From contig JBLDXI010000013.1 of NCBI GenBank assembly GCA_047495785.1, positions 930,001 to 994,000 on the forward strand: DNA of 64,000 bases. Reading direction: 5' to 3'. Each line of letters opens with the position of its first letter. Positions within the stretch are counted from its first letter, which is position 1. The notes under the pieces were generated by a model. That model did not search any database. It was given only the letters and a program-made list of their open reading frames with translations, and was not told the DNA's origin. Of this stretch, positions 22,668-55,991 are shown piece after piece. Source of the DNA: Lepidodermella squamata. Lineage: Eukaryota > Animalia > Gastrotricha. The position numbers and the translations under genes are program-made.

Positions 22668-24301
22668 GTGGAACAAGATAGACGATTGTGATGATGAAAT
22701 GAACAAATTATTAAATAGATTCTCGAACATGTGTAATTCAATTACCCAGTAGCGCTGGATTTCTTTATTATTTTTATTACTTGTTATTATACATACTTTC
22801 GCACTGCGGCGGCGCGATTCTGGGCGCGCGCTCCTTTTTACGGTAATATTTATTATTGTAAGATTATAAATTTACAAACGAGGCGACACATTAAAACTTT
22901 TGAAAAGTTAGAGCGGGCTGAGATGTTGGCGGCGCGCGCGCCCGCAGTTCGGCGACGCAGTTTCCTGGCGAGCTCGCGATGATTAAACTCATTAAAGGCG
23001 TACGGCAAGCCGGCCGACCATCGTCACTCGTTATCTAATTATAAGCATAATTTTATCGTCTATCGTCGAGCTTAAATTTTATTATCGTCATTATTGTCAT
23101 CATTATTTGCAATCAAAGTTTTTACGCGCCATTTGCGCGCTAAATCAAAATCAAAGCCGTCGCACGCAGCCGTCGACATATTTATTGTTATTATTTTTCT
23201 TTTATTAGCACAGTGCTGCGAAGCGTGAATTATTTTTCTGGCACGCATACTTTTACTTACCATCGAAATTATCTCGCTCCCCTCCCTCTCGCGCTTAATG
23301 CAAAAAGCTATTCACGCGCTCATCACCGCGATTTTTATTGGTGCGATGTAGACGGCGGCAACAGCAGTAGGATGTTCATCATCGAGATATAATCATTGTT
23401 ATTCGAAAATTATTTTCTCGTTAAGCTTCCATTTATGTAAATCAAGAGCAGCTCCAGAGAGGACATAATTGAGTAATAACAGCGTGACGACAAAAAATTT
23501 AGCGACGAATGAACTGATAAATTTTACAAACTTGAAAATTTCTGCCGCTATGTCCCGATTCGAAATCAAGTGTTCTGGATAGAATTTTCCTGTTAAATAA
23601 AACCTCCTGATACATTTTTATTGTGTTGCGTATTATAGCAGCTTGGGCTGCGGTAGGGTGACATCACGAAATTTCAAGCCGCGGAACACCCTCGATTCAT
23701 CATCATCATCATCGTGGCTCGACCTCAAAATTTCGAAGCCGAGCAGTAGGTTTAATAACTTGTGAAAATCGATGCATTTTTGCAAAATCAGTATCCACCT
23801 TGAGGAACTCATTAGAATATTCAAATTTGCTCAATAACCCTCAGCGTTTTATTGGCTAAGCGAAAATACCAGTGACAGAAGCAGCTTTACAATTAGCGCA
23901 GTCAAATAAGATTTTTCCTATTCAAAAGCTCGGCTTATTATAGTTAGAGCAAGTCCAGAAAGCGATTGCTAAAAAAGCAGGGTAACAAAAATAATGCGAA
24001 CCGAGTCAGGATCAGGGTGAAAACAAACAGGATAAAATAACTGAAGCAATCTTTTCCAAGGTAGTATATAATATTAAAAATAAAAAGCTGTGGACATATA
24101 AATGAAGAGTTCCTCATGCGAATATCACAGACCGCAAAATTATTATAATGATCTCAACATACAAAATATAACTCACGATTCATCATAATTCGACTCAACG
24201 AAAATGCAATGAAAAGAATTGAGAAAGTAAATAAACGGAGTGAAAGCACCGACACGGTGTGAAAATACCAACGTCTCGAGTCAATTAACGACATAAGTCA
24301 T

Positions 24302-33200: not shown

Positions 33201-36200
33201 GCGGGATCCAAGTTCGATCTGTGCCGGTCGTTTGATCGATAACGTGTTCGGGGATCTCGACCCAAGCGTGCCCATGGACGAATTGCGCCGCTTCATTTGC
33301 TCGGACCGGTCGATGGGTTTCGTCGATGAATTGCGCGAACTATTCGATTGGACAAACTTCACGCGTAGAATCGACGAAGTAATGAAACAGCAGAATGCGA
33401 TTATTTTTAGGGAGGATGGCACACCTGAGCATATCTCTTTCGACTGGGCGGGTCTGACCGATTCTGCTCTGCAAATGTTCGAATCTGGCAATGTATTACT
33501 GACGGCTGGCGATCGGTGGGCTGACTTCATTCGAAAGGCTATGACAGGGAAGCAGAAGGTCAAGGTCTCCGTCGATTTCTTCAAGCTGATGAAACCGAAC
33601 CTCAACTTTGACAAACTTTTTACCACTGACACTATTGTGCGAATGGTGCCATTTTTCATGCAACTGTTGGACTCTGGATCGGCGCCTCATTCTCAACAGG
33701 TCTTTCGCAGAGGCTCGCAACTACTGACTGATACAATTAGCGGTGCTCTTACGAGCCACACCCCTCGGCCGATGCTAATCCAGCCTAATATGGGCAATCC
33801 TAATAAAATGGCGTCGGGCTACTACATGCCATACCAGACACCACCGCAAGCCACTTTCACCTTCGCACCGCCTTCTTTCGGCAGCGAGCGACCTATGTTG
33901 AACTCTTTGCTTGGAGGGGCGAGTCAGTTCGCATCGCCGCTAGCGAAATTGTTCTCGAACCCATCTCTATTTGACGGCTTGCCTAACATGAGGCACAAAC
34001 GATCGGCCGACAATGTGACCGAAGATATGAACGATTACACGCCTAGCATTAATGACGTTTTTCTACGCATCGATAAATTCATCTTGAACCTACCGAAAGG
34101 TGTAGCAGCGCTAGCTTCGGGTAAGGAGTGTGATTTCGGTAAGGCAATAGCCGAGTCGCTTGACATTGTCCTGCCACCTGACATGGCTCCTCATGAGAAA
34201 CTTCGCAACCGCCTTAACGACGCGCTTTGCCGCGTTGACTGGGGCGCATTCGCTACAGCCTTTGAAAATGACGTTCAATTCGGCCCGATCGCTAAAACTC
34301 TGGCGCAGTTGTCTAATTACGGTCGATACGTCCGCGGCTCGTTGCCATTTGACAACGCGAGGATGGCATCTTGGATGTCACCCATCGTCACTAATTACTC
34401 ACAAACAATTGAGTTGGTGAACAAATTTATCGAAATGTCGCTTCCAAGTCCAGCGGAGAAAACTGCGACTGACGGCAAATCCGCATTCAATTTGGCTACT
34501 TTCGAAGTTGCTTACTCCGAACTTGCGAAAATGCTTGAACTCGACATTGATGATCCGAGATTGCCTGGCCAAATTTTCTACTACGGAGCTCTTCGCGATG
34601 TCTATGACGTTCTGGAGGAGGCGAAGCTCTGGGAGCTTCCCCCTGGTACTTTCAAACAAGTCTTGCTCGATAATTTCCCCGCAGCTGACCAACGCTATAA
34701 GCGGCAAGCTTACCCACGTGATAATACCGGCGAAATTTTTCTCGGGGGTCGTGGCAATATGCCTTCTTTCGGCCTCGGGGATATTGGAAAACTGGCTAAA
34801 GCGGCAAGCGCTTTGGGTGAAATGTTCAAGGTTTCCCAAGCTGCGTCCAAAACTGGCAACGACCTAATTCCACCAAACTCGATGTGGGCTCGCGCGAAGA
34901 ACGAAAACGGAACAACTTTGCCTATTCATAAAAACAGCAATTTAAAGACTCTAGCCGAGTCATTTTACAGCTCGGGTAAAATTGGAGATGTTGCCGGTAT
35001 CTTGAACTCGGCTGACAGGTTGGAACCAGTTTTACGCGATCGCGATTTTGTATCTCAACTCGGGCGGATGACGAAACTATCTTCTTCCATCACCGATCAA
35101 CTGGGAACAGTTGTTGATACAATGTCAACTGGCCAACAGGGATCGAACAACTCATCAGAGAGGATTGAAACGACAACGCTACCAACTACGTCAACTACGC
35201 GGCCTTCTACTACAACTCGGATGGTTAAATCTGCCCCGGCTGGAAATATGATGCTTGGCGGCCTAGGTGGCATGCTGGGAATGCTTGGAGGCGGCGGAGG
35301 AGGCGGTAGCGGGGGAGCTCTCGGTGGCGCTGAAGCCATGCTAGGACTTCTGTCGACGGCCTGCAAAATGCCGGCTCTTCGAACTATGGCTGCTCGAATT
35401 CTACCAGCTGGCTTAGCCCCAGCTTTAGACTGGATCTGCGTAATGCAAGAGCTGCATCCCTCGGAAATTCGTCGACTACTATCCACTGCTCTCAGTGTTT
35501 TGCAGGCACCTCCTCCGATGCCCGAAAACAGCCAGGCGATGAATATGTTTCCTAGTTCCACTGGAGGTCTGATCGACGGCCTTTTTTCAATGCTGAACGT
35601 TCCGAAGCCTGGTCGGGAACTTGAACCTTTCCTCGGGCCAGCCACCCAGCCAACCAATGGACCGGACCCTATGAGCATTCTAGGGCCGTTCAAAGTTATC
35701 GCTGACCTGATGACTGATGTAGCTGTTAATCACCCTGGGTTTCTATGCGATGCTGTCTTAGCGCCGTTTGTTAACGTGCCGTCTTTCGCCAGTACTCGGC
35801 TCTACTTAAACTGGGTGCAAAATACGGCTCAACTGTTGTCTGACATATTTTCGAAATCTAAAACAATTCCTGACTTTATTTGCGACTTCGTTCGAGCTGA
35901 TTTCGAAAGTGTCTATGAGCGCATTCGCAATGGGACAGGAATTGTTGACGTCATAAGGAAATTATCTGAACTTCAGTCTGGAAATACTACCATGCTGTTC
36001 TCATGCGATTCGCTCATTCATTCAGTTCAGGCCGTTGTTGAAACCTCTATTTACTACTCATCTAAAAAACCGAGCTGGCCTAAAATTGTTGGCCAGTGTA
36101 GCGATGAAACGAAGAAAGCTCCATCGGCTAATGCGGTTCTGCATGCTGTCCCTCCGATTTTGGAAGAAGTCGACAGTTTGTTCCGCATTCTTTCATCAAT

Positions 36201-39200
36201 GCGCCATAGGACTGCGACGAAAAGCCTGCGTGCCCTAACTAGTTTGTTCAGTGATGTCGAACCGGCTTTGGATAATCTGGATATAACTCTTAAACCCGAG
36301 CAATGTATGAGGTTTTGTGAGAAAAATTTCGCCATTTTTAGCTTTTATATTTTTCAGCTTTCAAAATTTATGTGTCCGAGCTGTTTTCGGACAAGTATCA
36401 AACGGAAAAGCTGTTGTTGAATACGCTTCAACTCGATCCAATCGTAGTGAAATGGCTGCTAAACACGGCTGTTATCGATTTTGAGCAAATTCACTCCTTC
36501 AACTTGACGCGGCCTATGATTCAACATGTACTGTGCAACGCCAGTCGCCTTCAGAGCTACTTGTCATCATCACCCCAATCTGGTTACTATTCTCGAGACA
36601 TCTCACGTGGTGCCTGTGCGTCACCGGAAACTCTGGAGGCTGTGTTCCGTCACATAACCGATTCATTTAGCTTCACGAAACTACTCGAGAAGGTGAGTTC
36701 CAAACCCCTGATTAAAACTCTATTTCCCCCAAACGGTGATGGTACCATAATAATAGATAGAAAAGCTTCATTCACGATTGGATGTAAGTTTGAAAGCCTG
36801 GTATAGTAAACCCGTTGTCAACTTGAATTGAAAATTTAATTTTTCTATTTAATTAACGATTGATCTTAATTTTCCCGAAACAGCTTTCTTGGTACACAAA
36901 TTTGATGAATGTGGACTGGCTATCGGATGTATTACGGCATGGGGCGACGGCTGCCGAACTCGCTGATCAACTGGTGCCATTGCAGTTTTTAAGCAACGGC
37001 CTAACCCTCAAAGGCCTATTCCACGCCCTGCCGCAGCTTGAGGAATTCATAGGGCGAGGTGGGCCTCAAAAGCTGGCGGCTGAACTACGGTCGATGGCTC
37101 TAGACCTTGAGCCGATGCGGTCACTCTTCCCTGGTCTAGATACAATTTTAAATCAGATGGAGGTCGTGGCTCGAGGCGTTGAGTCTATGCGTTATTTTAC
37201 GGTACTCAAGCGACATAAAGGTATGAAAATCGATGCAGCATTGAATGGGTTGACATCATTATCTATTATTAGTTGTTTTCGCGGAAATTGTTCCTGATCA
37301 GCGTGGCTTCAGTGAGCGTTTATTTGAGGCTGGGTTCAATAAATCAGTCATCAATACCATCCTACACTCACCCATCAATGTCATTAAAGCTATCGCAATG
37401 CATCAGACTGAGTTCGAGGAGATGCTATGCGATCCTTACAGGTTGATGGGCTTGATCAATACAGCCGACTGGCCAGTCGACCCAGCCACTTTTGTTTTCG
37501 CTGTTTGCGCGCCAAGAGCTACCAAAACTACAATCGAACCCGAAGGCCATGATGAAATGAACGACGTCACTTTCCCACCGTTGCGGCGATTGAGGCCCTA
37601 CAACGACGACGCCTTCCCTTCAGCGCCAATGACGCTTCAACATGCCCCGATTTCGATGACTTTGACGAAAAATGGCGCGGCAAATGCTGGCGGAATGGCC
37701 TCGGCCGTCGCCAATAGCCACCCTCGGCATCAAGTTGACCAGATCTTTGTGAAACCCCAGCTACGTCTTCGCCGCGATGTTTCATCGCAAACATTGGATG
37801 CTATTAAGGGCAAAATTGGAGGCGTCTTACGCGACGTCGTCCAGTTCGGTATGGCGTCGTTCCTCGGCAAATACAACATCAGCCACGGCGATTTGCTCGA
37901 ACTTGGCGGTTTGCTAGCGGTGGAAAATGTTCGAGATGTCAAAGCTGGGTTCGAGCACTTCATCGGCGAATTACCGCCCAGTTTCCGCAATTGGGCAGCC
38001 GACGTCACCGAGCGAAGTCTTAGCGGCACGCAATTACTGCAGTCAGCTAGCCAGATGATTTGCGGCAGAACGCTGAGCTTTTCGATACTACCCGAACAAG
38101 ATGCTCAGGCTGTTCAGGAGAATCTACAGGCTCAACGCGAAAACCAGGCGGAACCCGATAAGCCTGACGATATTTCAGCATTGCTGTTCAACTCAAGTTT
38201 CGATTGCGAAGATTTGTACGATTTGATACGACGCCAACCCATCGGAAGTTTGATGTGGGGTGTTTTGAAACCGTTGCTATACGGCAAGATTCTCTACTAC
38301 CCAAATACAAGCGAAGCAGATTTGGTTATGTTACGAGTGCGAGCGTTGTTTAACGAAGTGCGGAGTCTGCAAGACCTATCTGCAGCCTGGGCGAAAGGGA
38401 CGACTGAATTGGGCCTGGTTTTCAACAGCACTGACAATTTGGCTTCTTTGAAAGCAGCTCTTGATAACCCGTTCATAAGCGTGGCTCTGTTGAACCGATA
38501 CGGCATGTCCGGGGCTGACTTCTTTTCAAACCTCGAAATCATTCGAACAGTGGCTGATAAGCACTTGGACACCGTATCCTTAGTCGCTGGAGCTATGTCT
38601 CGTTACACGAAATGCATAGCTGTCGATAGGTTCGAATCGTTCGGAAGTGAAGCTGAACTCGAGCAGCGGGCGAATGAGCTAAATGCTAACAAAAGCATTT
38701 TAGCCGCTGTAGTTTTCCAGAACCTGAATGGAACCCAGCGCTACCCAGACGGTCGACCGATGCCCGGCCACTCTATTGGTTCACTGTTTTTCCCGACCCA
38801 TTTACGGTATAAAATCCGAATGGATCTTGATACGGTGATGCCAACTGATAAATTGAAGGAAAAAATGTGGCAGCCGGGCAGCGATCTGTTGATTTTCGAC
38901 AGTGATACGCGTTACCTGCGAGGTTTCATGCAAATTCAAGACACTATAGACCGCGCTTTTATCTCGATCATCCAGTCAGTTTTGAAGGCGAATGCTAGCG
39001 GTGTGAATTCCAACGCAGCTTTGGCCCAAACTGCCGACTCGGCCGCTCAGCTTCGCGAATCGTTGATGGTCACCCTGCGCCAGTTCCCACACGGGTGTTT
39101 CGAGCAGGACCGATTAGCAGTTGCCAGCGCTTATTTCATGCCAGTTCTCGTTACCATGGCCTGGCTGTTCATTTTCGCGAGTATTGTGCGAAATCTTGTG

Positions 39201-42200
39201 CGAGAACGTGAGGCTGGCTTGATTGAAACTCTGCGCGTTATGGGCCTCGACAGCCGGGCTTACTTCTGCGCTTGGTTCGTCAACGTTTTTATCGGACAGC
39301 TCGCTACAGTCGCTGTATTTTTGATAACATTCAAAATCGGGAACATCTTCCGCCTGGCAGACCCGGCTCTGTTGTTCTTGTACTTCGAACTCTTCTCGTT
39401 ATCGAGCATTTCCTTTGCTTACTTAATGAGTTCGTTCTTCTCGAACACAAATTTAGCCGGGCTAGTCGGAGTTCTGGTTTTCCTGTGTTCGTTCCTACCC
39501 TACGTTTTCTCGTTCAGTCTCGATGTTAACTTCCCAGTTTGGGCTAAGCTAATATCGGGTATTTTGTCTACAACCGCCTTCAGCCACGGTTGTTTGATTG
39601 TAACCCGCTTCGAGCTGCAAGGCGTTGGCCTGAACTGGAGCAATATGAACACAAATCCTGTAAGCGGCGAGCCGTTGACCTTTGTCATGTGCCTCGTGGT
39701 CATGTTTCTAGACTCGATTGCTTATCTCGTTCTCGGTGCTTATATTCAACGGATTAGACCGGGTCGTTTCGGGCAGCCGCGACCTTGGCATTTCCCAATT
39801 ACCGACTGTTTCCGATCGAGCCGGCGCCGCCGCATGCCGCGTTTGATGAACGCCCATCAACGAAACGACAAGAATCCTGTTTTCGAAGAGCCGGAGGTAA
39901 AAGCGGATTCGGGTAACGTTACTATGGGTGCCAATAGGCGGCCAACAGTAGGCGTTGCACTCAGGAGCTTGACCAAAGAGTTTGGCGGAGGCCGTCTCGC
40001 CGTTCGAAACTTGACCATGGACATTTACGAAGGCCGAGTTACTGCTTTACTTGGCCACAACGGAGCAGGCAAAACTACGACAATTTTGATGCTGACTGGC
40101 GTGTACAGCCCAACTGTAGGAACAGCTTACGTCTACGGGCGTGACGCGGCTGCCTCGGGCGAGTCGAATGCCGCTAAACTTCAAATCGGCTTCTGCCCAC
40201 AGCAAGACGTGTTGTTCGAATTCATGACCGTTCGCGAGCATTTACGCCTGTTCGGGCATATTAAAGCTGGCTGGTCGGGTGACGAATTGAGCCGAGAGGT
40301 CGAACGCATGTTAACCGCGCTCGATCTCGTCAAACAGGCGAATGTTCGTGTTGTCCACCTATCAGGCGGTCAACGGCGCCGATTGTCAGTCGGTATTGCT
40401 TTCCTGGGCGGCTCACGTGTTGTGATCCTGGACGAGCCGACCAGTGGGGTTGATCCACACGCGAGACGGTCGATCTGGCACGTGATTTCTCGATTCCGCG
40501 AAAATCGAACCATCCTACTCTCCACTCACCACCTCGACGAGGCTGAAGTTATGAGTAACCGCATTGCGATCATGCACCAAGGCCGTCTGTTATGCTACGG
40601 TTCAGCCATGTTCTTGAAGAGCCAGCTTGGCACAGGGTATAAGCTAACGCTATCCCACACCCGGAAAAAGACTACGGCTCAACAACGCGCGCAAGAGGCT
40701 GATGTGAAAGATGCGTTCACCCTGCAGTGGATGCAAAATTTTGTTCCGGAGGCTAGGTTGTGCGAATCCTACGGTAACGAAGTTTCATTCACCCTACCCG
40801 CGACGAACTCGGCCGGAATGTCTGCGATGCTGAGCTCGCTCGATCAACAACTCCCGACTCTCGGCTTTTCGAGTTACGGCATCTCGCAGTGCACGCTGGA
40901 AGATCTTTTCCTTAAGGTCTGTGCCGCGGCTGATGCTGGCGACCCGATTGACCCGGAACACATGCGTTATGCCTCGTACAACCCTCATGATGACGATTAT
41001 CTGGAGACTAGCGATGTTGTTTCAATCGACTCGGCTGTTAACATGGCTGGCTTGAAGGCGATGGTCGCGAAGCAGTATACAAATCCAAACGGCATGCCGC
41101 TGCCTCGAATGAATGCACCTCGCCCGATTGTTTCATTCTCCAGCAATACGAAGGTGACTGGGGCGAGACTGCTAGGCTACCAGATCAGCGCATTGGTGGA
41201 AAAACGGCTTCGTCACCACTGGCGATCTTCGTCCAGCTACGTGTCTCAAATGCTGCTGCCATGTTTGTTAGTCGCCCTGGCTATGTCAGTTTCAATGATG
41301 CGGCCTAGGGTCAAACCTCAGCCAGCCCTTGAGCTCTACCCGGCGCTGTATGCTCAACCCGAGACTGATATTTTCTTCCGGCCAGCCGGTTTCGACCGGC
41401 CTGGTGATTTGAGCTCTCCACTGTCTCAAATTCACACTGCAATTTTGACTGATCCTGTTGGACTTGGGCCGGTTTGTGTTTCGAAGCGAAGACCTTCCTC
41501 AGAACTGTTGAGATCAGCTGCTGTTTCTCCATTCTTGTCCGCCGAATTTCCTCGCCTAACAACAGAGCCGTGTTCAGTCAGCGAACCTTCTATTATCAAT
41601 GTAATCGCTGCTAATCGAAGTGCAGGTCTGAAGGGAGTTTACGCCGCGGCTGGAGTTCCGTTTGAACTCGACCTTGGCGCCGATTTCGGCTGTCGCAATG
41701 GTTCTGGCGAGATCAAGTTACCCCACTGGCGGCTTAATAGTTCGGAATCTCTGTGGCTCTTGCCGCCTAGCTCCTGGAACGAACCAAGTGACGTTGATAT
41801 CGACGACTACCTACTAGCGACTGAGAGAAATTTTATCGATAAACGTTACGGTGGTTTCAGTTTGGCTAAGGGCAGGGACGGCCGAGCCCGGGCTACAGTA
41901 TGGTACAACACCAAAGCCTACCACGCCTTACCAGCTTTTTACAATGCTTTGAACAACGCGTTACTAAGAGCCGGAGTTGCATCAACAGGCGCGCCGGCTT
42001 ACAGCTCAGGCTCGTACGGTATCACAGTTTCGAGCCATCCTTTGATGCCAAAGAATGCTCAGTTATCTGGAGACACCCTGCAGGACGGTTTTACTGATAT
42101 GAGCGTCGCCATTATAATTCTGTGTGGTGTTTCATTCGTGCCGGCTAGTCTCGTGGTTTACGCGTCTCGCGAGAGGCTGACCCGCCAGAAGCACATGCAA

Positions 42201-44568
42201 CACATCTACGGCGTCGGTTATATGACCTATTGGATGGTTGCGTTTTGCTGGGACCTTTTCAGCTACCTGTTAACCGTTGCCTTAATCGCCGGGCTCATGC
42301 GTATTTTCGCTCTTGAAGTATTTGTTGTCGGGCAAAACTTACAGGCAGCTGTTATGCTGCTCGTCCTATACGGATGGGCTACTATACCTTTGATGTATTT
42401 GCTGTCTCGCTGTTTCGACGACCTGTCAATCACGTATTTAGTCATGTTTTCGATCAACATTTTTATCGGAATTATGACAACGGCATGCGTGTATTTGCTT
42501 CAATTCTTTTCGTGGGTGCCGACGGCTCAAGTCGCTCTCCAACATGCCTTCTTACCGTTTTTCCCGCAATACGCATTGGGCGCTGGTTTATTCAAATTAA
42601 CTCGAAATCATTTGATGACGGCACTTGTGAACCGTTTCGGCGTTCCTGATGACGAGGATTCGTCGCCCTACCTTTCGCCGTTTTCGTTCTCAATGCTAGC
42701 CTGGCATTACATTGCCCTGATTGCGCAGGGCGTGGTGTTTTTCGTCATCAACTTGATTCTGGACCTGAATTGGACACCTCGCTCTATCGACCCGCCGCTA
42801 CGACGTTCCCGTCGATCGCCCGCCGATCCGGCTGATGGCGAAGATGACGATGTTGTTAACGAGAAACGTCGAGTAATTGAAAGCGCTGGACCTAGCGCTG
42901 CCACATCTGCCGCGAAAATGGCGGCTGGTCGTAATTGGCTGCTTACTTTGTACCGTTTGAGCAAGGAATTCGCTTCACGCGGACGAAAAGTTCGTGCGGT
43001 TGACGAGCTCTGCTTGGCAGTCGGCCAGGGTGAGTGCTTCGGCCTTCTGGGAACGAACGGCGCTGGTAAAACAACGACGTTCCGCATGCTATCGGGCGAA
43101 ACTGTGCCAACTTATGGTTCGGCACGCTTAGCAGGCGGGCGATTCGATGTATCGAAATCGATTGGCCGTTCTATGCAGATCCGCATCGGATACTGCCCAC
43201 AATCTGACGCGGTTGACGAGTGAGTTTTTTTGTTAATTTGGAATAATATTATGGTTTATCATCATTTTTTCATTAAGGCTCCTTACTGCAGCCGAACACA
43301 TTCAAATTTACTCGCGGATTCGAGGAATTCCGTCTCGTGATACTGATTTCATAACGCTCAATTTGCTTCGCCACTTGGCACTTGAGCCGTTTGCCTCTCG
43401 AGCGGCAATCACATACAGCGGTGGGACCCGTCGCAAGCTCGCCGTAGCTTTGGCTCTACTCGATGACCCGGATGTTGTCCTATTGGTATATAATTTTGTT
43501 CGATTTTCAAGCATCATTTAAATTCGTTTTTTAAAGGATGAGCCGACCACGAGTATGGACCCCCGAACTAGGCGAATGGTTTGGTCTGCGGTTCTTGATA
43601 CCATCCGAGCCGGGCGATCTGTGGTGCTTACCTCACATTCGATGGAGGAATGTGATGCCTTGTGCACGCGCCTGGCTATCATGGTCAACGGCCGACTTCG
43701 TTGCCTGGGCAACCCGCAGCACATTAAGAACAAATACGGCGCGGGATACACGGTAATGGTGCGATGCAAGGGCGCCGATAACGTCGCCCCAACACTGGCC
43801 TACATGCGCCACAACCTGGGCAGCCAAGTGGCGCTGATCGATCGAAATGTCGAGACGTTGGAACTGCGTGTCTCGCCTCATTTCACCGATCAAACTACTT
43901 CGCGGCAACTCAATGCGCTGGCTTTGGCTGGAGGTGCGAGTTGCGTAGGACCAGCAGCTCAACACCAACCGTGCCAACTAGGGACTGTTTTTGAACTGTT
44001 AGAAAGGGCCAAGAGCCAGCTGCATATCATAATTGACTACAGCGTATCGCAAACAACCCTGGACCAGATTTTCGTCAACTTCGCACGCCACCAAACTGAT
44101 GCGGATGAAAAGCGTCAAAATGCGAGGAGCAAGTCGAAGAGCAAAAAAGATCGCCAGAATGACAAGAAGAAGTTTGATAATGGCGGAGTTTGGTCCACCG
44201 AGAGCACTGACAGCCCGTGGTCTTCAGCTGAACGAGTGCCTAGAAAGCGCTCCAAGGGAGGCAAACCTCGTCGTTCGTCGTCTCTCCATCACGTGAGTCA
44301 TAACTCAGACAGCCGTAGTACAACTTCGTCGTCGCTAGGCAGCGGTTCTCCCCACATGCCGAGCTCATCTTCACGGCTGAATACCATGAATAATCGGTAC
44401 AATGTAGACCCAATGCGTGTACCAACTTTACCACCACCTGACGTCATATCAACGTGTCCTTACGTGACGACGGCGAATAACAGGCAAACTTCACAACAAC
44501 AAGCTATCAGCAACATGCAAACGTATCAACGAAATCAGCGTCTGCATCAACATCTTCACCGCCACTGA
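30252..44568 (+). CDS. Giant ABCA-subfamily full transporter (ABCA12/ABCA13-like size), ~4,604 aa. Exons: 30252-30408, 30459-31630, 31678-36304, 36358-36692, 36884-37220, 37273-43219, 43278-43485, 43537-44568.
   Basis: ABCA N-terminus LLWKNLLQRWRQP...EILWP...C.Y....LPSSG.MPFLQSFIC. NBD1: GHNGAGKTT, LSGGQRRRL, ILDEPTSGVD. NBD2: GTNGAGKTT, YSGGTRRKL, LLDEPTTSMD, TSHSMEEC. C-terminal YSVSQTTLDQIFVNFA. Exon lengths sum to 13,815 nt in frame. Confidence 0.93.
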
Positions 44569-44779
44569 AAATAATGCTCAAAATAACTTGTTTTCGGTTT
44601 TATATTGTGTATTTATATGAGACGGCTCAAAATTTATTGTGACTTCGGTAGAGTTTTTAGACTGAACATACTGCTTCCAAACAGAGTGCAAACCTGTTGA
44701 AATAGTGTTAGCTCTGTTGTGAATACCTTTTTTTTATACAAAAAAACACGCAATCAAAATAAAATTTATCAATTTATTA

Positions 44780-45841
44780 TCATTGGCTTTTTTCGTTGTA
44801 AATATCCCACAGTGAAACAGTTTTATCGCGGCAGCTAGCCGCCAAAATGGAAGTGCCAGGTTTAGTCAAAATAAAGTCGAGGGCAGAAATCGACCGAGAT
44901 CCAAAACCTGAAGGTTGCCGGTGCAGTTCAAGCGATCCCAAAATGGAAAGACTTTTCGGTGATATCAGGGCAATAGTGCCATTACTAAACCCAACAGCGC
45001 ACAGTTTCCGATCTGATCGCAATCGAACAGCAGTGACGCCCGTAGAAGGAGTCCGTGCCATTGATGTTTTAAAACTGGTCATATCGTCGTTCAAAACAAG
45101 CTTGAAAATCGCATTCGTTGTAGAGCCGACAATTAGAAATGCCGGGCGATTGCGTAATTTATCCGGCCCAAGCCCATCCGCGTTTGTTGGGCAAGCTTCC
45201 ACGTCATCCTGCTCTGCATTTTCGAATAATGATGTCAAAGAGAAACTGTCCAAATACCGGCAGCTTGAACCGTGGTCAATAGACCACAGTAAAACGCAAG
45301 AATTCTCGAAACCGCAAACTAAACGCGTTGATTTTGATTCTGAATCCGAGATAAATTTAACAAACATTGGAGCGCCTAGTTTGCCAAGAGATTCGGGAGG
45401 AATTAGTTTTAAATCCTGCTTCATTGTTGGACCTTCCACAGCTAGTGTTGAAACGGCAATTGAGCTGTCTTCACCAGGCCGGGCTATCATTTCGTTGAGC
45501 TCATCGAATTGGCAAAACGAGGGCGAAATGGCATCGGGTGGGACAGAAATATTAGAAACCAGTTGAAATTGATTGTTGAAAATCGCCAATTCGTGGACTT
45601 TCGATTCGGCGACAATTAGACGTTGAGATCCAGAGGTGACTCGCAAGGTGAGAACAGGTGCTTCTACCGAAAAAACTGCCCGGTTGGATTTGAAAACTGG
45701 CCTGTATGTCACCAGGTCCCAAAACTCAATTGAGCCATTGGACAAGCCAACTGCGACATAGGCCTTGCCGTCCACATTAAACCCGCATAGTGCACTCGGT
45801 TCACTTGAAAACCCTCGCAAGATGAACTCAGGTAAAATCAT
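44780..45841 (-). CDS. GNB1L: GNB1L/ASA1-like WD40 repeat protein (TTT-complex associated), single exon, ~353 aa
   Basis: N-terminal PEFILRG, central GAPMFVK...VCGFENSCVLLW, GVTAVRLRSDRKLCAVGFSNG and C-terminal LAASCRDKTVSLWDIY match the GNB1L/Asa1 pattern as I recall it. Confidence 0.75.
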   Translation of the reverse strand: MILPEFILRGFSSEPSALCGFNVDGKAYVAVGLSNGSIEFWDLVTYRPVFKSNRAVFSVEAPVLTLRVTSGSQRLIVAESKVHELAIFNNQFQLVSNISVPPDAISPSFCQFDELNEMIARPGEDSSIAVSTLAVEGPTMKQDLKLIPPESLGKLGAPMFVKFISDSESKSTRLVCGFENSCVLLWSIDHGSSCRYLDSFSLTSLFENAEQDDVEACPTNADGLGPDKLRNRPAFLIVGSTTNAIFKLVLNDDMTSFKTSMARTPSTGVTAVRLRSDRKLCAVGFSNGTIALISPKSLSILGSLELHRQPSGFGSRSISALDFILTKPGTSILAASCRDKTVSLWDIYNEKSQ

Positions 45842-46757
45842 TGAATCTAGGCGTGACAAAAAACAGTTTCATCGAAGTATGCTCCTCTTTATTACTATAA
45901 TTTATATTTATATATAATGTAATTATCGCATGGTTTTAACATGGATAGTCAGATTTTGGCCCGAATCGAGCTCTTTTTTCTCGGTCCCGATAAATTAAGT
46001 AATAAATGCCACGATTATTTTGAACAAATTATTATTATCATCAACAGCAAACCGTCCCAACAAAAGTTGACAGCCAGCAGAAAGCCAAAGTGATGCGATA
46101 ACTCATATTCATTTGCAGTAGATTTTACACAATAACACAGACTCTCTCGATCTCTCGATTAATTAATTAATACTATTTCGAAATGGATATAGTCATTTTC
46201 CAGGACCTTGGCGACTTTCTACCACAACAACAGTCGTTTGGAGCCGCACTTAACACCTCATTTACAGTACAACATAAAAAAGTAAATTCTACTCGAATTT
46301 CGAAATAATTACATACTGGAATATATACGTTACAGAGGACGAGCCCGAGTCACTAGCAACCGCAACAAGGGCAAGGTTGTGTACAAAAACGACGCAACAA
46401 CGGGCGATCGGTGGCAGTTGAATGAGCGAGTCTTAACCTTATATCGGAATGCCAAGAACGTGTCACCGCAAAATCGCAACAGAAAAATTTCACTTATTCC
46501 CTTAAATATTTGCATGCAAGTTCAATCAAGTACATATAAGACATCGAAATAAAGAAAGCACCGCTCACGTTTTAGTGATAACCAAGAAGTAGTTGCAAAT
46601 TAACGCAATGGGAGCCCAATTTTTCACCAAAAAATGAGACCGCTGCAAAAATACGCGTGAAGTAGAGTAAGGAAAACACGGGTTTGCACTTAGATCATTA
46701 TCATCACCATATTATAATAAATCAAATCAGTGTTTCGTTTGATTATAGTTGTTGCGA

Positions 46758-49697
46758 TTACACTTCGTAGCTGGTTACTGCTATTTTTCGGCAAAGCGGC
46801 CAACGAGCGGTGAAAAATGATTGAACACGCCGGTTGTTCGCCATTTTCAATATTTCAGATACAACCATGATACTCGACGATATGCACACCAAGAAAACGA
46901 GATCTAGAAATATAGCAATTCAACAAAAAATTACGGAAATATTTCTTATACTTACCCATGAGACTCAAGGCTTCAGTTTGGAAGATTTTTTGGAACGGTG
47001 CGAAGTAGATGACGAGGAGTTGACAGATCAGCGAGGCCCCAACAGCGCCAATGAAGAGTTTGTTCGCGAAGAAATTGATTTGGAAAACGCTTTTGGTTTG
47101 CGACCGACTAGCAAGCGCGTTGAACATGTCGAAGAGCACGAAACACGTGAATGTCATCGTCGTGTCTCGCGGTGTGATTTTGTTGTCGATCAACTCGCGC
47201 CAGAACACGAAAAGCGTACCGCAAACGATAGTAGCTGCGGAGATGACAATCGAGAACAGCAGGTTCGGCGACAAAATCGAGTCGCGAGACCGACGCGGAG
47301 GCTTTTTCAGCACGTCTGGGTCGACAGGTTCAACTCCAAGGCTGTAAAGAGTACATTTTTTAAGAATAAAAATGGGCAACCGGGTAAACCAGAACGTACC
47401 TTTGAGCAGGTGGCCCATCCATTATAATATTAATCCATAAAATTTGCATAGCATTGAGAGGTGTTGGCAGACGCATCAGAGTTGAGATAGCAATCAAGCT
47501 CAACGCTGCAATACTCCTGAAATTTCGGAAATTAATGAAAAATAGCCCGCAATAATGGAAATCGCATGACTCACGTGCTCAGCTGGAATCGAACGAAGCT
47601 CCGGATGTTGTAGAAAATACCTTTGCCTTCCTCGATTGCATGCCTATTTGAAAGAAACATTAATTTCCGAGTTTTATGGTTTCAAAATCGAGCTTACAAA
47701 ATCGAGGTGAAGTCATCATTGACCAGGATCATATCGGCAGCCTCGCGTGAAACATCGGTACCCGATCGGCCCATTGCGATGCCAATGTCAGCCGCTTTCA
47801 GGGCGACGGCATCATTGACGCCATCGCCAGTCATTGCAACAACACAGCCAGTCGCCTGCAGGGTCTTGACAATTTTCAGCTTATGCCGAGGCGTGACGCG
47901 GTAGAACACGTTGACTTGCGAAATCAAACTCGGCAACTGAGTCGGGTCGACCTTATCGAGCTGCTCGGCTGAGAACGCGCCCGCACCCGTGTCAATGCCA
48001 AGTCGAATCGCAGTCGCGACAGCCGTTTCCTCCGAATCACCCGTTAGCATTTTCACGCGAACCCCAGCGCCGAGCAGCGTTTTCACAGCATCAGGCACGT
48101 CTTCCCTCGGCGGGTCCATAATGCCGACGAGACCAAGGAAGGCCATGCGATTTTCGGCAGTACCACCTGCGATGCCGACAACTCTCAATCCGGACGAGGC
48201 CATGCGAGTGGCTTGGGTGTAAAACATGCGAATCATATCCGGCGTCAGCTGGCGGGTTTCGCCCGGTGCGGAATAGAACAGCGTACAACGGTCCAACACC
48301 ATTTCAAGCGCGCCCTTCATGTAATACATCGTCTCTTCAGTCCGTTTATGCCTAACCTTTACTTGCATCCATTTAGTCTCACTCGAAAACGGCCATTCGT
48401 ACAAACGATGCCACTCGTCGCGTAAATCGTTCTGAAACCCGGCTTTCATCGCTGCCGTAATCAAAGCGCCTTCGGTCGGTTGCCCCATCAACTCGCCATT
48501 CGTGACGAAGGCATTATTGCACAGACAGCCAGCCCGTAGAACGTGCGTAATTGTCGGGTGGCTCTCCTGGTGGACGGTCTGGCCCTGACAGAAAATCACC
48601 CCGCTACAGCTGTAACCGATCCCCGTGACTTCGGCGTGTAAACCGTCTGAGGTGCAAATCGACGTGACTGTCATCTCGTTCTTTGTCAGCGTTCCAGTTT
48701 TGTCCGAGCATATAACGTTGACACAGCCCAACGTTTCGACAATCGGCAACTTTTTCACTATAGCCTGGCGTCTGGCCATTCGCATGACGCCGATAGCAAG
48801 GGTGACAGTAACTACGATAGGCAGGCCCTCTGGAATAGCGGCGACTGCAAGCGAGACGGATATGGTGAACAACTCCAGAACTTGATGGCCTTGTAATAGC
48901 CCAATCAACATAATAAGGCCGATAATCATGAACGAGTAGAAGGATAATTGTTTGCCCAAGGCGTCCATCGAGCGTTGCAATGGTGTTTTCGGCGACTCCT
49001 GGGCTTGCATCATTTTAAACATTTCGCCGAACTGAGACGCATCAGCCGTGGCTGTGACTATACCCCGGCCATGTCCGCCCCGAACTAGACTGCCCATGAA
49101 CATCATCGAGGAAAGGCTGGCCATCCCACCCGAATTCGCGACTGGTTGCGTAGTTTTGTAGACCGGCTCAGTTTCGCCGGTAAAAGACGACTCGTCGACG
49201 GCAAGATCGACCGCTTCGATAATGCGGCAGTCGGCTGGCACGCGGTCGCCAACCGAAAAACAAACAATATCACCAGGTACGAGTTCCCTAGCCAGGAAAG
49301 TCTCCACCCTGCCCTCTCGCAAGCAGTGGCATTGCGGCGGGACTAGCTTGGTCAACGCGGCCAGCGATTGTTCAGATCTGTACTCCTGGACGAAAGCGAC
49401 TGTAACGACGATGAGAATGGCTAGGGTGATTGAGATGCAATCGTCGAATTGGCCCATGATCAGACTGATGGCGGCCGAGGCGAGCAGCAGTAGGATCAAC
49501 GGGTTCTTGAATTGTTCCAGATACTTCTTCCATAGCGGCTCGTTCTCTGTAACGTCAAACTCGTTGAAGCCATTTTCGCGCTGCCGCATCTGCGCCTGTT
49601 GCTGAGTAAGGCCGTTGTCGATGTCGGCCTGCAAGATCGACGCAACCTCGGCGACGGCCAGCGATGAAGCTTGTGCACTCGGCAGACATGTTATCAT
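46758..49697 (-). CDS. ATP2C1: Secretory-pathway Ca2+/Mn2+ P-type ATPase (SPCA/PMR1), ~905 aa from the first ATG. Exons: 49697-47698, 47643-47575, 47516-47400, 47341-46956, 46903-46758. The frame stays open upstream to 49910.
   Basis: EVASILQAD...NEF...EPLWKKY; TGE; IPEGLP; DKTGTLT phosphorylation site; GDGVND; MDGPPAQS; [17 protein letters not shown]. Confidence 0.95.
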
Positions 49698-49910
49698 TCT
49701 TTTCGCCGCTGGCGCGCCTTCTTTATTCGTTGTATTGTTGTTACTATGAATCAACAGTGATTCGCCTATTTTGCCCGAATCGGCTTCAAACTTGCCAGAA
49801 CTTGGCGTCTGCACAGTTTTCGTGCCAAGTTCAGGCGAGGGCAACGGTTCGTAGCGGCGAAATCTGAACTTCTTAACGAGATCCGTCGTAGCTGTAGCGT
49901 TGTTGCCAGT

Positions 49911-50012
49911 CTACTTAATAATTTAACAGACCTATAAAAATTCAGTAAAATCGTAATTAGCCTGCTGAAATAAACAAAACAATATTCTTCGGATTTATTT
50001 TTCAGATTTTTT
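49911..50012 (-). promoter_or_regulatory. Intercistronic-like spacer between KLHDC4 and ATP2C1: polyA signal, U-rich tract and splice acceptors
   Basis: Minus strand after the KLHDC4 TGA: AATAAA (49999-49994), TTGTTTTGTTTATTTCAGCAG, GCTAAT, TTTTTATAG (acceptor 49932), AAGTAG (acceptor 49911). Confidence 0.6.
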
Positions 50013-51750
50013 TCACTCGTCGTCGTCGTCGTCGCTGGACGTGTCGCTCGAATCGTCATCACCGATATCATCGACATCCATCAAGCTTTCACCATCGTCA
50101 TCGTCTTCATCGCTACTTTCAACCCACTCTTGCTTTTCGGCCGTATCGGCGATCAAAGTCGCCCAGCCATCGTCCATTCGCATTAAATTAAGCGTGTAAA
50201 AATCCGACAGCGTAACTTGCCGGTCTTTTACCTCGCACATGCCCCCGTACAGAAACAACGAGTGGCCTTTTACAGCTAACATCGTGTTCATTCGCGGTCT
50301 AATCGGAGCCGCGCCTTCGCCCTGCATTTTCACCGTCAATTGAGCCCATTTGCGCTTATCGGCGTCGAATACGTAGACATCGTTGAAAAAATTACCATTA
50401 ATCGCGTCTTCGCTTTCCTGGTCGGAAACGCCGCCGAAAAACAGTACACGGTTGTTTTGACCAGGAAGCAGCACAGAGGAACAGCCGCAGCGGATCGGAT
50501 TAGGCTTTTCGCCACTTTGTCTAACTTGAACCCATCGCCACGGCATGTTAACGAGCGGGGTTTTCGACGCGCCTGAGTCGAATTCACTTACACCGTCGAC
50601 TTGCAACATGTACATGTCAGTGTGGGTGACCCCGGCGTCAACTTGTTTCGCCACCCGATTTTTGCTATAGCCACCGTAGACAAGAATCGATGACATAGAT
50701 GGCAAGTAGACAACTTGAGCATTGGAACGAGGCGGTGGTGCGTCGCCCAGCGGTTTAACCAGCTTCCATTTTCGGGTACTCGGATCGAAAACGTGGACAT
50801 CATTGTAATACGTGAAGTTGTTGTTCGTCTCGAAGAAACCGCCGAAAACAACGAGGTGCCGCTTGAATTCTACCATCTTGTGACCAGACCGTGGTGACGG
50901 GCATTCGCCAGTAGCACTACGAAAAAAGCCATGAAAAACAGTTGGAAATGAATTGGCAGGGTAAATGTGTATTAACACCTGCTCGAGTGCAAATAAAGCT
51001 CTAATCCTCAGAACAAAACAAACCGCCAAGCAAACCACATAAATAAGCTAGTATAAACCTTATGCTCTCCCAGCGGTTTTCTTTGACATGAAAGCACCAC
51101 AAGTCGCTGAAGTGGTGGAATTGAAGCTGTGAAGGACTGGCGAACTCGCCACCATATAGCCATAATTGTCCGCCACCGAGATGTGACATCACAGTCTATC
51201 GCAGGATCAAGAAATAGCATTCACCAAGATCATGATGAAATGCGGATCTAACCTGATGAGACGCTCTAGGCAATGGCCTTGCATGATCGGCAGGTGCAAC
51301 AAATTGAAACCACTCATTTGTCTTAATTTTGTATTGAAATAAGTCGTCGTAAACGGTTGCTTTCGAACCGTTGAAAAAGTCACCACCGAAAAAGTACAAC
51401 TCGTCACGTTCGGGATGCACAGCTATGCTGATATTGCACCTAATTTGTTAACACAAATCCTAAGAATACTTATTTACTCAAAGTTATTCACGCTTACCTC
51501 GGTGAAGGAGCCGCACATGGGACGAATGACGGCTTGGTGACCGCTGACTTGATTTGTGACCTTTGCTGTAAGATGTCTTTCACGTCAGCCTATAAATAGC
51601 GTAAAATCATCTGTCAATTTTGGTCATATGAAAAATTACCTCGCCAATTTCGGCTAAGAGCTTTTTCAGTTTTCTGTCAGCTTTCTTCTGTTCCCCCTTG
51701 CTTGATTTCTCCACAGCTCCGCCCTTGCTTCCTTTCTTTTGCTTCCCCAT
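50013..51750 (-). CDS. KLHDC4: Kelch domain-containing protein 4, ~476 aa. Exons: 51750-51640, 51589-51498, 51439-51253, 51195-51059, 50916-50013.
   Basis: MGKQKKGSKGGAVEKS start; HPERDELYFFGG; GGQLWLYGGEFASPSQLQFHHFSDLW; PSPRSGHKM; LFLYGGMCEVKDRQVTLSDFY; acidic tail. Confidence 0.92.
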
Positions 51751-52256
51751 TTTAACGACTAAATAGAGGAAAATCAGACAGTTTTAGAATAAGTTTTAAT
51801 CATGAAAAGACCAATCTATAAAAAATCAAAGTAGTATTAGCGACCAATCACTTAAATTATTCGTTCTTCATTGATACAAATGTTAAGATGTCTCAGAAGA
51901 TGAATCAAAAAATAGTTAGTATCCGAATATCGAACGAGCCTGCAAAATTGGCAGCACAAATTATTCTTCATGATCGCAGCTGAAACAGCTACGTGTCACT
52001 AATTACCGCATGTAGATGTGTTCTTTGAAAATATATATGTATTAGGCGCTTCGCCTATTAGCATAAGGAATTAGTATTCAGCATCGATCACCGATTTCAA
52101 AAGTAAGTACAGCCAAACTATCACGTAAGTAAAAAACTAGAAGACGCATTGGTCCAACTAGTTTCACCTAGACACAGTATACCACAATTATACCAGCCTG
52201 ATAGCCTAAGCAAGCAATATAGCTTGAAGTCCCTTGTAAGTTTATCAATTGGCGAA

Positions 52257-53384
52257 TTAGGCCTTATTCAGCAACCCAGAGATAACTTCTTTAAGTTTCT
52301 TGTTATCGGCGGCAAATCTGCGAACACCATCAGAGAGTTTGTCGGTGGCCATAGGATCTTCATTCAACTGCCAACGGAAGGACTTCTCGTCCAACCCGAC
52401 GTGAGGAAGAGGATCTTTCGACGCACGGGCTGCTTGAACATCCAGAACACGCACAACTGGCTCGTTCATGGCAGCAAGTTTGTCCAAAAGAGAGGGAGCG
52501 ATAGTCAACATGTCACAGCCACTTAAACCCAAAATTTCATCAGTGTTACGGAATGAAGCTGCCAAAATTTGCGTGTGGGCACCCACTCGTTTCAGATAGT
52601 TGTAAATCTGAACTACTGAAACCACACCGGGGTCAGTTTCGCGAGTGAAGCTCTTCTTGTCAGTATTATTCACATGCCTGAAATATAAACATGAACATGA
52701 AACTAAGGCGAGAAAAATAACACATACCAGTCCAAAATTCTACCGACAAACGGTGAAATAACTGTGGCCCCTGCATTCTGGGCAGCAGCAGCGGCTTGGC
52801 ACAGGTGAAACATCAGAGTCATGTTGCAATGAATGTGCTCTCCCTCAAGAACACGGCAGGCCTGAAGGCCCTCCCAAGTGCTAGCAAGCTTGATTAGGAT
52901 TCTGTCAGAGGAAATTCCACGAGCCTTGAACATGTCCAAGTAGTGATGCGCTTTGTACAGCGAAGCGCATGAATCAAATGATAAATCAGCATCAATCTAG
53001 ACGGGAAAATTATAGAGCGATTATTTCAACATCGAGTTCATACCTCAACGGAAACACGGCCTGGAACGATTTGGAGAAGCTCGCTGGCAAAAGTAACATA
53101 AAGCTCATCGACAGCACGCTGAACCAGATTTTGGCTGCCCTGATCCTTGACTTTTTGCAACGTCGAAGCAATCAAAGAGCTGTAGCGTTCGTTTTGGCAT
53201 GCCTAACATGCAGTAGTTGCTTTCAACAATTAATATTAATAGCGCATTTCAGCAATACCTGAAGTAGCAACGTCGGATTGGTCGTTGACTCTTGCGGTTT
53301 GAATTTTTTCACCGCCTCAAAATCCCCGGAGTCAGCAACGATAACGCTGACTCGGCGAAGTTGTTCAAGAGTTGACTCACTCAT
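52257..53384 (-). CDS. TALDO1: Transaldolase, ~324 aa. Exons: 53384-53259, 53202-53044, 52996-52728, 52677-52257.
   Basis: VADSGDF...[10 protein letters not shown]; GRVSVEID; catalytic [11 protein letters not shown]; [11 protein letters not shown]; LAASFRN; GCDMLTIAP. Confidence 0.96.
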
Positions 53385-55078
53385 AGTTCAAAGTTTGTAT
53401 CAAGCCTACAGCCAAACAAGGCAGTGAAAAAGCATTGAGCATGAGAGTTCCGAATGTTCAGTGTCTATTTCAAAAGAACAAAAAATGATTCTACAACCAA
53501 TGGGGAATCTGGAACAGAAAAGCCGTCATCGATCTGTTGCGGAAGAAATCCCCGAGAAAAATGGCTGTGCACCGTAATCCTATTCACTTGGCAAGCTTGG
53601 CCTGCGAAAACACTAAACCCTGAGAGCGTAAACGGTAAACGAGAGTGTTTCAGCGTTTGCTCGTCCAGGAATCTTCGCGACAAGTCGCGCAAAAAGCCTT
53701 CTTTTTGCTCGACTTAACGAAGATGTTTCGAACACTCGAAAGGGACTGTAAATATTTAATTGCCACATCTAGGATTTTATTTCTTTAGTCTAAAACGTAT
53801 TGTTTATTATAGCGCCCGAAAATAGTTTGTACTAATCCTTCACCTATATAATAATTAACCAACCCAAAATCATGCCGGTTATTTTGTAGGGTTTTGCACT
53901 GCGAAACGAAGTAAGGCCCTCTGGTGGCTGCGATCGAAGCCTGGTGACTGTAGACAGTAGGAACTGCAATAACTGCAATATAACTGGCATATATGTCACA
54001 TTTTGTATGCAAGAGATAGCTTAACCGGCTGCCAACTGGCTTTTGATCTCAGCGACCACGAAGTTCTTCGCGATCCCCTCATATCTAATCCACTCAACCG
54101 AGTAGCCAGCGGTGTCTGTTAAAGAAGGCGAAGGGCTGCTGGCTGCTGTTATTTTTATATCCACAAACACGCTTCGGCTGTTTCGTATAGAACATAACTT
54201 GATCCAACTTAATTTCTGACCCCCTCCCATTCTCCTAAACTTTGGCCATGGGGTGTGCTTCAAACCGAAGCGAACCCCGGCCCAACGCGCCTGGGGCCTT
54301 ATGGAGCTTATACTCGACTTATACTTCGTTTCGTTGCATTATAAAAAACATCAAGCACTCCATAATTGAAAACCAGTTACCCAATGGAGACTTATTACGT
54401 CACGTTGTCGCTTACAGATATGGCAATACTTGGGGCCGAAGATCGAATTAGGAAAAATGCCCGCAACCATTCATTTGATTGTAATGGTTTAATAATGTCC
54501 GCCGAATTAAGCCACCGACTACCTGACCACTCACTGACTGCAAGTTTTACAAAGAAAGCTACCTGCTGTCTATACTCGATGAGTCTGGGCATCGATCGCG
54601 CCACAAGAGACAGACAATGTCGTGTTTTATGTGTCATCAGAGTTGAACTATAGTAGGTAAATGTTCCACATGGGCCTGAAATGTAGGCAAATATGGAAAT
54701 TCTTCTGTGACAGTGTGGAAATCGGAAATGATCCAGATGAATTATAGGTAGTCATTTAGCTAAATAACTGCAATACCTGGGTTATGCAAAATGTTTCCGG
54801 CGAGGTCTTCCATTTTAGAATAAATAGATCAAATCCTCAACAAAATCCGGTCAATCATAATCGAAATCAGATGCCATTGTCAGGTTGCCTTTTCTCCGCG
54901 GTATCCAACTACTATTAAATGACCCCACTGCCCAGAGTCACCCGATTGTGCGTAGTGTTTTTCGTTTATATGTTCTTTAATCACTCCCCCTTCTCTTGGA
55001 AAGTCGGCTTCCACCTGTTAAACTTGTAATTGAAAGGCATTTGTTATTACATAGGAATGCTTTGTTGCTCTTGAAAGA

Positions 55079-55991
55079 ATGGGAAGTTCAGACGGGATTT
55101 TCGAAGCAGAAAATATTTTGAAAAAGCGCGTTCGAGGTGGCCGCGTCGAATATCTTATCAAGTGGAAAGGATACAGTTCAAAACATAACACATGGGAGCC
55201 TTCAAAAAATATTCTTGATGTTCGGTTGATAAAGAGTGAGTATTAAACACTGCAAAATATTCTTTATCTCATCGATTTTTTCAGCTTTTGAACAGGAACA
55301 AGCTGCACTAAAGTCGGGATCCAAGACCCAAACCAAAAAGCGGCGTATACCTTCAACTTCATCTAGTGACGAAGGACATGAAAGTGACGAAGATGATGGC
55401 GAGAAAAAAGGAAACCACGAGCAGAAATCCGACACCGAGACCAAATCGTCAAAACCTGAACAAGAGCCTCCAATCATCACCCTCAAAATGTCGTCCGGCC
55501 AGGTTGAAATTTCCGAAAGAAAATCAAGTAGCAAAGATCAATCAGCAACGCCGACTCACTCGCACAAATCTCACAATGCAGCCTCGACTTTAAATGATGG
55601 CCATAAGAAAAGTCAACATTCCAGTAGTGAAGGGCAATCATCCTCTGCAGCTAATAAGCTGGCAAAAACAGCATCTAGCTTCCATTCTTATTATTATAAT
55701 CCATCAAGCGATGGAAAGGTCAGAGCGCATGACATGGTTGAAACCACCACCGGCGAAAAAGCGCGGTCAGGGCTTGCTAAAATATTGCCACTGGATAGAC
55801 CTTCAGCATCGGCAGCTGCTGGAAGCTTGTTAGGGCAGCTAGTTGGTAGCTCACCTGTTTGGCGACCAAGTCCTGTGATCACGGATGTGACAGTGGGTAA
55901 GCTAATAAATAAATTATTTAATTCATTTATTCCCTCGTATATTTTCACAGGTGGAAAAACGGTGACATTTGTCGAAAGAGTGCCTTATTGA
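55079..55991 (+). CDS. Pc: Polycomb / CBX2-4-6-7-8 family chromobox protein, ~269 aa. Exons: 55079-55235, 55285-55896, 55951-55991.
   Basis: Exon 1, missed by the ORF track, encodes a chromodomain: [45 protein letters not shown]. The spliced C-terminal Pc-box is [13 protein letters not shown]|GKTVTFVE. Confidence 0.92.

Follow-up and report, generated by a model that had tools for sequence, protein, structure and literature searches.

How is the 5' end of the ATP2C1 mRNA made in the gastrotrich Lepidodermella squamata, where the gene follows closely behind another one? KLHDC4 and ATP2C1 are unrelated housekeeping genes, and they lie only about 80 bases apart. Both are found in the window, the 64-kb stretch of DNA analysed here (GCA_047495785.1, contig JBLDXI010000013.1, positions 930,001-994,000), and both are read from its minus strand as members of a co-oriented run TALDO1>KLHDC4>ATP2C1>GNB1L. 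The original prediction was that ATP2C1 is co-transcribed with KLHDC4, possibly within this longer run, and is released from the precursor by spliced-leader trans-splicing. All statements on transcripts of the KLHDC4-ATP2C1 locus are drawn from the DNA. The reading that is considered probable here, at roughly 0.6, places an internal junction of a spliced-leader-resolved operon comprising the four genes in the KLHDC4-ATP2C1 spacer.

Gene content and conservation of the run

The ATP2C1 assignment is solid. The predicted protein contains the Pfam domains Cation_ATPase_N, E1-E2_ATPase, Cation_ATPase and Hydrolase, and it shows 61-63% identity to vertebrate ATP2C1. The KLHDC4 product is a kelch-repeat protein of the KLHDC type. 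The GNB1L-like identity of the WD40 protein at the end of the run is a lead only, suggested by language-model features (score 0.97), and an exact look-up of this single-exon protein gave no match. In human, TALDO1, KLHDC4, ATP2C1 and GNB1L are located on four separate chromosomes. The cis introns of the run are about 50-140 nt long. Eight of the 11 that are readable end in TAG, and the local donors are GTATGT, GTAAGT and GTGAGT.

At the head of the run, ATGs occur just 5' of the TAG acceptor of TALDO1, and none occurs between this acceptor and the start codon (Table 1). A chromodomain-like ORF (55079-55991, plus strand) is divergent to TALDO1, and the 1.6-kb region between the two is likely the promoter region of the run. 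At the other end, an AATAAA begins two bases past the GNB1L stop. A very large ABCA-type transporter gene (30497-44568, plus strand) converges on the run and ends at 44568, leaving about 210 nt between its stop and that of GNB1L. Elsewhere in the window, a ZFHX-like zinc-finger homeobox gene (779-9008, minus strand) gives three homeodomain hits. It is adjoined by an AT-rich stretch of about 14 kb (10000-24000, GC 0.37-0.43) without long ORFs, which could be a regulatory desert or large introns.

When a protein collection was searched with the first ATP2C1 exon, its N-terminal 203 residues and the last KLHDC4 exon, one relative alone was found and no L. squamata protein. The search for further relatives in JGI metagenomes gave nothing useful. 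The relative was found through the best ATP2C1 match (P0001) and is represented by four ENA metagenome contigs (L001-L004), of which L001 carries a locus of 14.8 kb. These contigs show the same order and orientation as the window, with TALDO1>KLHDC4>ATP2C1, a 348-aa WD40 protein and then the convergent ABCA gene. The proteins of the window and the relative are 75% (ATP2C1), 68% (KLHDC4) and 39% (GNB1L) identical. At identical residues the same codon is used in a fraction of just 0.35-0.43, which means that synonymous sites are saturated. Both the tight spacing and the gene order are kept in L001-L004 at this saturated divergence. The predicted co-oriented run is real, and it persists in a distant relative, its status as an operon aside. 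The neighbour upstream of TALDO1 differs (a kinase gene in the relative, the chromodomain gene in the window), and the ABCA neighbour is common to both. Because the convergent ABCA gene cannot be part of the unit and is conserved too, the gene order supports an operon constraint without proving one.

The KLHDC4-ATP2C1 spacer and the other junctions

The features predicted for the spacer were all found on the minus strand, running from the KLHDC4 stop through AATAAA, a T-rich tract and CTAAT to two acceptors and the ATP2C1 frame (Table 1). The gaps between the stop and the acceptors, estimated before at about 80-100 nt, measured 81 nt (49932) and 102 nt (49911). Since the acidic tail of KLHDC4 aligns to within three residues of the relative's end, this TGA is the true end of KLHDC4. 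The T/GT-rich tract also holds a canonical acceptor-like TTTCAG (49970-49965), which was absent from the original prediction. At 49910, the GC content jumps from 0.2-0.33 to about 0.5.

Table 1. Positions of the features of the run in the window, with counterparts in the relative.
Feature	Position	Strand	Description	Relative
Head of run	53382..53408	-	TAG acceptor 53408-53406, 21 nt before TALDO1 ATG 53384-53382	
TALDO1>KLHDC4 junction	51748..51800	-	ATTAAA 51800-51795; acceptor TAG 51761-51759 (36 nt); KLHDC4 ATG 51750-51748 (8 nt on)	
KLHDC4>ATP2C1 junction		-	AATAAA 49999-49994; 62 nt to acceptor 49932, or 29 nt to TTTCAG	
KLHDC4 stop	50013..50015	-	TGA	C-terminal acidic tail aligns with relative's KLHDC4 end
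AATAAA	49994..49999	-	Sole A[AT]TAAA of spacer; starts 14 nt past stop; presumed KLHDC4 poly(A) signal	
T/GT-rich tract	49965..49982	-	Ends in TTTCAG; poly(A)-site downstream element or third possible acceptor (TTTCAG/49964)	
CTAAT	49956..49960	-	Branch-point-like word, 23 nt 5' of first acceptor	Not conserved in L001
First acceptor	49932..49940	-	TTTTTATAG; exon would begin 49931	TAG kept
Conserved block	49905..49934	-	TAGGTCTGTTA exact	22/30 ungapped matches to L001:9823-9852
Second acceptor	49911..49916	-	AAGTAG; its TAG is the in-frame stop opening the ATP2C1 frame	
ATP2C1 extension	49698..49910	-	71 codons, ATG-free, in frame, coding-like; last 213 nt before first ATG	L001:9842-9964
First ATP2C1 ATG	49695..49697	-	MITCLP...; matches vertebrate ...ETMIPVL	MIQCLP
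ATP2C1>GNB1L junction	45839..45893	-	AATAAA 45893-45888; acceptor TAG 45849-45847 (41 nt); GNB1L ATG 45841-45839 (5 nt on)	
End of run	44773..44782	-	GNB1L stop TGA 44782-44780; AATAAA 44778-44773	

In the relative, the KLHDC4 stop lies at L001:9749-9751 and the spacer measures 74 nt, versus 81 nt in the window. Further on come a T-rich tract and then TAG with GTCTGTTA (L001:9823-9833); the position of the T/GT-rich tract of the window is not conserved in L001. The spacer layout is more than chance. The block at the TAG 49934-49932 is kept in a relative whose synonymous sites are saturated. Two of the relative's contigs (L004:1481-1641 and L001:9740-9900) differ from each other at three positions of the junction, one in the T-rich tract, one directly past the in-frame TGA (ATT to ACT) and one, synonymous, in the ATP2C1 extension (GCC to GCA). 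The conserved block is invariant between them.

This block, which begins with the TAG of the first acceptor, is the sole significantly conserved non-coding DNA among the three spacers of the run. Its score was reached in 6 of 3000 dinucleotide shuffles, and the scores of the two control spacers in 112 of 300 and 159 of 300. The 11-mer TAGGTCTGTTA has a single copy in the 64-kb window and a single one in the relative's 14.8-kb locus, and the two places are orthologous. The 11-mers shared over the cluster of about 10 kb are nearly all exonic. The block reads AG/GTCTGT, which is like a 5' splice site and resembles the local donors save for the C at +3. It lies 21-23 nt 5' of the second TAG acceptor.

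Several other identities were considered for the block and rejected. It is not coding, as the ATP2C1 frame falls on it differently in the two species. It is not a general junction motif, as no second copy within two mismatches occurs at the other junctions. It matched no Rfam family, and Rfam was likewise without matches in the window. A conserved RNA hairpin was dismissed: the sequence folds no better than shuffles (z = -1.2 and +0.6), and the pairing is lost in the relative. A tiny intron of 21-23 nt (GTCTGT...TAG) that joins an upstream ATG would be in frame in the relative, yet it was rejected because the upstream piece in the window lacks an ATG and is closed by an in-frame TAG, and because 21 nt is far below the 50-140 nt of the introns. 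A conserved longer intron starting at GTCTGT was rejected as well, its downstream acceptors being at non-homologous positions.

The simplest reading of the block is that its TAG would be a used 3' splice site and that the bases following it would be the first of the mature mRNA. The conserved bases are mostly 3' of the AG, which is not an acceptor's need and would also suit a transcription start element. ATP2C1 might start at an ordinary cap site in the spacer; the block would then serve as a core-promoter or initiator element, and the acceptor-like words would be by-products of AT-rich DNA. Conservation centred just past the AG and off the pyrimidine tract fits such a start, and so does the TCTGTT of the block, one base off the Inr-like TCAGTT. 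The ATG-free leader described below is equally compatible with it. However, no TATA-like element is present 25-30 nt upstream in either species, a T-rich tract and a TAG stand ahead of the block in both, and the promoter would overlie the KLHDC4 poly(A) region. The ATGs of TALDO1, KLHDC4 and GNB1L are likewise preceded by TAG acceptors, at distances of 5-21 nt. A capped start in the spacer is considered unlikely.

A common layout was found at the junctions along the run. Each of the three spacers has exactly one A[AT]TAAA, located 36, 62 or 41 nt before a TAG acceptor. The sole hexamer sits in the last 8% of the 498-nt TALDO1>KLHDC4 spacer and in the last 5% of the 913-nt ATP2C1>GNB1L spacer, and under uniform placement both would fall that close to the acceptor, within 62 nt, with a joint chance of about 0.008. 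With the hexamers at the far ends of the long spacers, the upstream transcripts seem to reach the acceptor of the next gene, so that a promoter would have at most about 40 nt. The same layout is seen at the relative's ATP2C1>GNB1L junction (AATAAA at L001:13384-13389, acceptor at 13425). The relative's other two spacers, KLHDC4>ATP2C1 and TALDO1>KLHDC4, lack a canonical poly(A) hexamer, and the generality of the layout is weakened by these two. The hexamer positions in the window imply long 3' UTRs that extend up to the next cistron, of about 470 nt for TALDO1 and about 880 nt for ATP2C1.

The layout also bears on a promoter of ATP2C1's own. ATP2C1 could be transcribed from within the body or the 3' end of KLHDC4 and joined to a leader at the conserved acceptor, the outron being discarded, and no operon would be involved. 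Trans-splicing is possible without co-transcription, and the last part of KLHDC4 could hide regulatory DNA: over its last 60 or so codons the same-codon fraction is 0.48-0.56 versus 0.43 overall, but with 25 codons per bin this excess is not significant. Read-through transcription is instead favoured by the hexamer-acceptor layout, which recurs at each of the three junctions and, in the long spacers, has the only hexamer close to the downstream end. In our estimate, trans-splicing of ATP2C1 from such a separate promoter is improbable.

The ATG-free coding leader of ATP2C1

The ATP2C1 frame is open for 71 codons back from the first ATG, up to the TAG of the second acceptor. The codon score of this extension is +12.9 in the ATP2C1 frame versus -25.8 and -37.7 in the other frames. 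Taken by itself, its upstream part of 144 nt gives +9.2; the averages are 11.7 for coding chunks and -8.5 for non-coding ones. The peptide SGKI..LL(I/V)H..TTN is conserved, and the pair of ATP2C1 frames aligns best (score 44 versus at most 25). The gaps in the alignment to L001 are 6 and 18 nt, both multiples of 3, and the one polymorphism in the relative's extension is silent. The codon score, the conserved peptide, the gap pattern and the synonymous change indicate that the N-terminal extension is very probably translated.

The extension lies in a region free of start codons. From 49931 to 49698 there is no ATG in any frame, which is the case in 1.8% of shuffles; real coding chunks of that size contain 5.2 on average and never zero. 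Moreover, no ATG occurs anywhere in the 315 nt from the KLHDC4 stop to 49697. In the relative, the 139 nt past the conserved acceptor contain no ATG (9.6% of shuffles), and going upstream the first ATG is met 29 nt ahead of the acceptor. An ATG-free stretch that starts at the conserved acceptor suggests a 5' boundary of the mRNA at or near there.

Near-cognate codons in an A(-3)/G(+4) context are available, namely ACG 49886-49884 and ATA 49769-49767 in the window and ATA 9845-9847 in L001. Leaky scanning, in which some ribosomes initiate at a near-cognate codon and others go on to the main AUG, predicts a leader that is free of ATG and yet coding, and both the upstream in-frame coding signature and the lack of an earlier AUG are present here. 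This suggests a scanned leader with a long ATP2C1 isoform that is started at a non-AUG codon. Non-AUG N-terminal extensions produced by leaky scanning are known from FGF2, MYC and dual-targeted tRNA synthetases. ATP2C1 is similar to the FGF2/MYC type in its conserved, coding-like, in-frame upstream frame, in having no AUG before the main AUG and in its near-cognate codons in context; it differs in that the candidate start codons are not the same in the two species. A read-through fusion of KLHDC4 and ATP2C1 was rejected, with five in-frame stops between the two.

The open frame could also be an internal exon, if ATP2C1 were cis-spliced from an earlier exon, located inside KLHDC4 or ahead of it, from which the 5' UTR or the extension's ATG would come. 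Consistent with this, the frame is open without ATG up to the AAGTAG acceptor, and the coding-like composition begins exactly there. But the 315 nt between the KLHDC4 stop and 49697 could not supply that ATG, and the phase of the acceptor by the open frame differs (0 in the window, 1 in the relative), which would be unusual for a coding intron common to both. The ATG depletion in all frames favours a scanned leader over an internal coding exon. KLHDC4 itself spans about 1.75 kb, whereas the introns of the run are much shorter, at 50-140 nt. Cis-splicing of ATP2C1 from such an exon is very unlikely.

Gastrotrichs have been proposed as the sister group of flatworms. By analogy with flatworms, the first methionine of the ATG-less long form of ATP2C1 might come from a leader with a terminal AUG, spliced at 49911/49910, which we regard as unlikely. 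According to PMC12582326 (citing Cheng et al. 2006), flatworm spliced leaders with a 3'-terminal AUG can start ATG-less frames, and genes separated by same-strand gaps of at most 300 bp are trans-spliced. The locus is like flatworm operons in its short same-strand gap, and AAGTAG/ACT in phase 0 would fit a leader AUG. It is unlike them in that the relative's acceptor, TATAG/AG, is in phase 1; only a weak GAG acceptor would be in phase there. An AUG-ending leader would furthermore create long, out-of-frame, overlapping upstream ORFs over the KLHDC4 start in both species. The ATG depletion would then be without a cause, and it favours scanning. If an AUG-ending leader were real, it would point to a single shared origin of spliced-leader trans-splicing in gastrotrichs and flatworms, and the block, 21-23 nt upstream, would act as a docking element within the sequence that is discarded.

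The proposed operon and known systems

The DNA itself shows the anatomy of the junction and its conservation, a leader that is ATG-free and coding in character, and the layout common to the junctions. For the spliced-leader operon that we favour, we infer co-transcription, leader addition and the start codon used. The run would be transcribed from the divergent region upstream of TALDO1. The KLHDC4 mRNA would be cleaved and polyadenylated about 10-30 nt past AATAAA 49999-49994, with the GT/T-rich tract helping. The 5' end of ATP2C1 would be made by joining a short spliced leader at the conserved TAG acceptor, which would make 49931 the first base of the exon, and 49910 or 49964 may serve as alternative exon starts. 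The mature ATP2C1 mRNA would carry an ATG-free leader of about 234 nt. Scanning ribosomes would reach the AUG at 49697, and a fraction of them probably initiates earlier at a near-cognate codon, giving the N-terminally extended isoform. As in an operon, the genes are on the same strand with a very short gap between the 3' end and the acceptor (81 nt), and the hexamers precede the acceptors by 62, 36 and 41 nt. TAG was counted for the operon reading, as it is the usual acceptor of the run's cis introns (8/11).

In the SL2 operons of C. elegans (summarised in PMC12582326), the 3' splice site of the downstream gene comes within about 100 nt of the poly(A) signal and U-rich tract of the gene before it, with no room for a promoter. 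Some 50 nt ahead of the trans-splice site these junctions have a Ur element, made up of a stem-loop and UAYYUU, and they receive a dedicated SL2 leader. The run is similar in that unrelated housekeeping genes lie on the same strand, and in that a poly(A) signal and a U-rich tract are followed by an acceptor within about 100 nt. The SL2 layout of the original prediction is upheld with respect to the 3'-end signal, the U-rich tract and the acceptor about 100 nt on, and a full SL2 analogy with a Ur element and a specialised leader is hypothetical. In the spacer, the U-rich tract is present and no significant stem-loop was found. The sole conserved element is like a 5' splice site and not U1-like. 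Where C. elegans has UAYYUU in a Ur element, none was seen at this junction, and a gene-specific, 5' splice-site-like block is present instead. The distance from hexamer to acceptor is 36-62 nt in the run; the intercistronic region of C. elegans measures about 100 nt.

Spliced-leader operons are known from nematodes, flatworms, tunicates, chaetognaths and rotifers (PMC12582326, PMC12460157). In the operons of chaetognaths, tunicates and rotifers, the gaps are below 250 bp, the gene content is of the housekeeping type, no operon-specific leader is needed and the leader genes are in rDNA clusters (PMC12460157). The locus is like these operons in its gap below 250 bp and its housekeeping content; it belongs to a different phylum. 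A literature search found no published report of spliced-leader trans-splicing or operons in gastrotrichs, and the L. squamata genome paper mentions neither spliced leaders nor operons. The KLHDC4-ATP2C1 locus is probably a case of a known mechanism in a phylum for which no published record was found.

The locus adds an instance and its anatomy, not a new principle. It contributes a junction kept across deep divergence, a conserved element of 25-30 nt and a coding leader without a start codon. Through its conservation, the junction also lends itself to finding out which bases of the spacer matter. Together, the conserved junction, the block and the leader make a good test locus for the definition and translation of downstream cistrons. 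If confirmed by RNA, the run would be a clean four-gene operon that is conserved between two distant species of one phylum, probably Gastrotricha.
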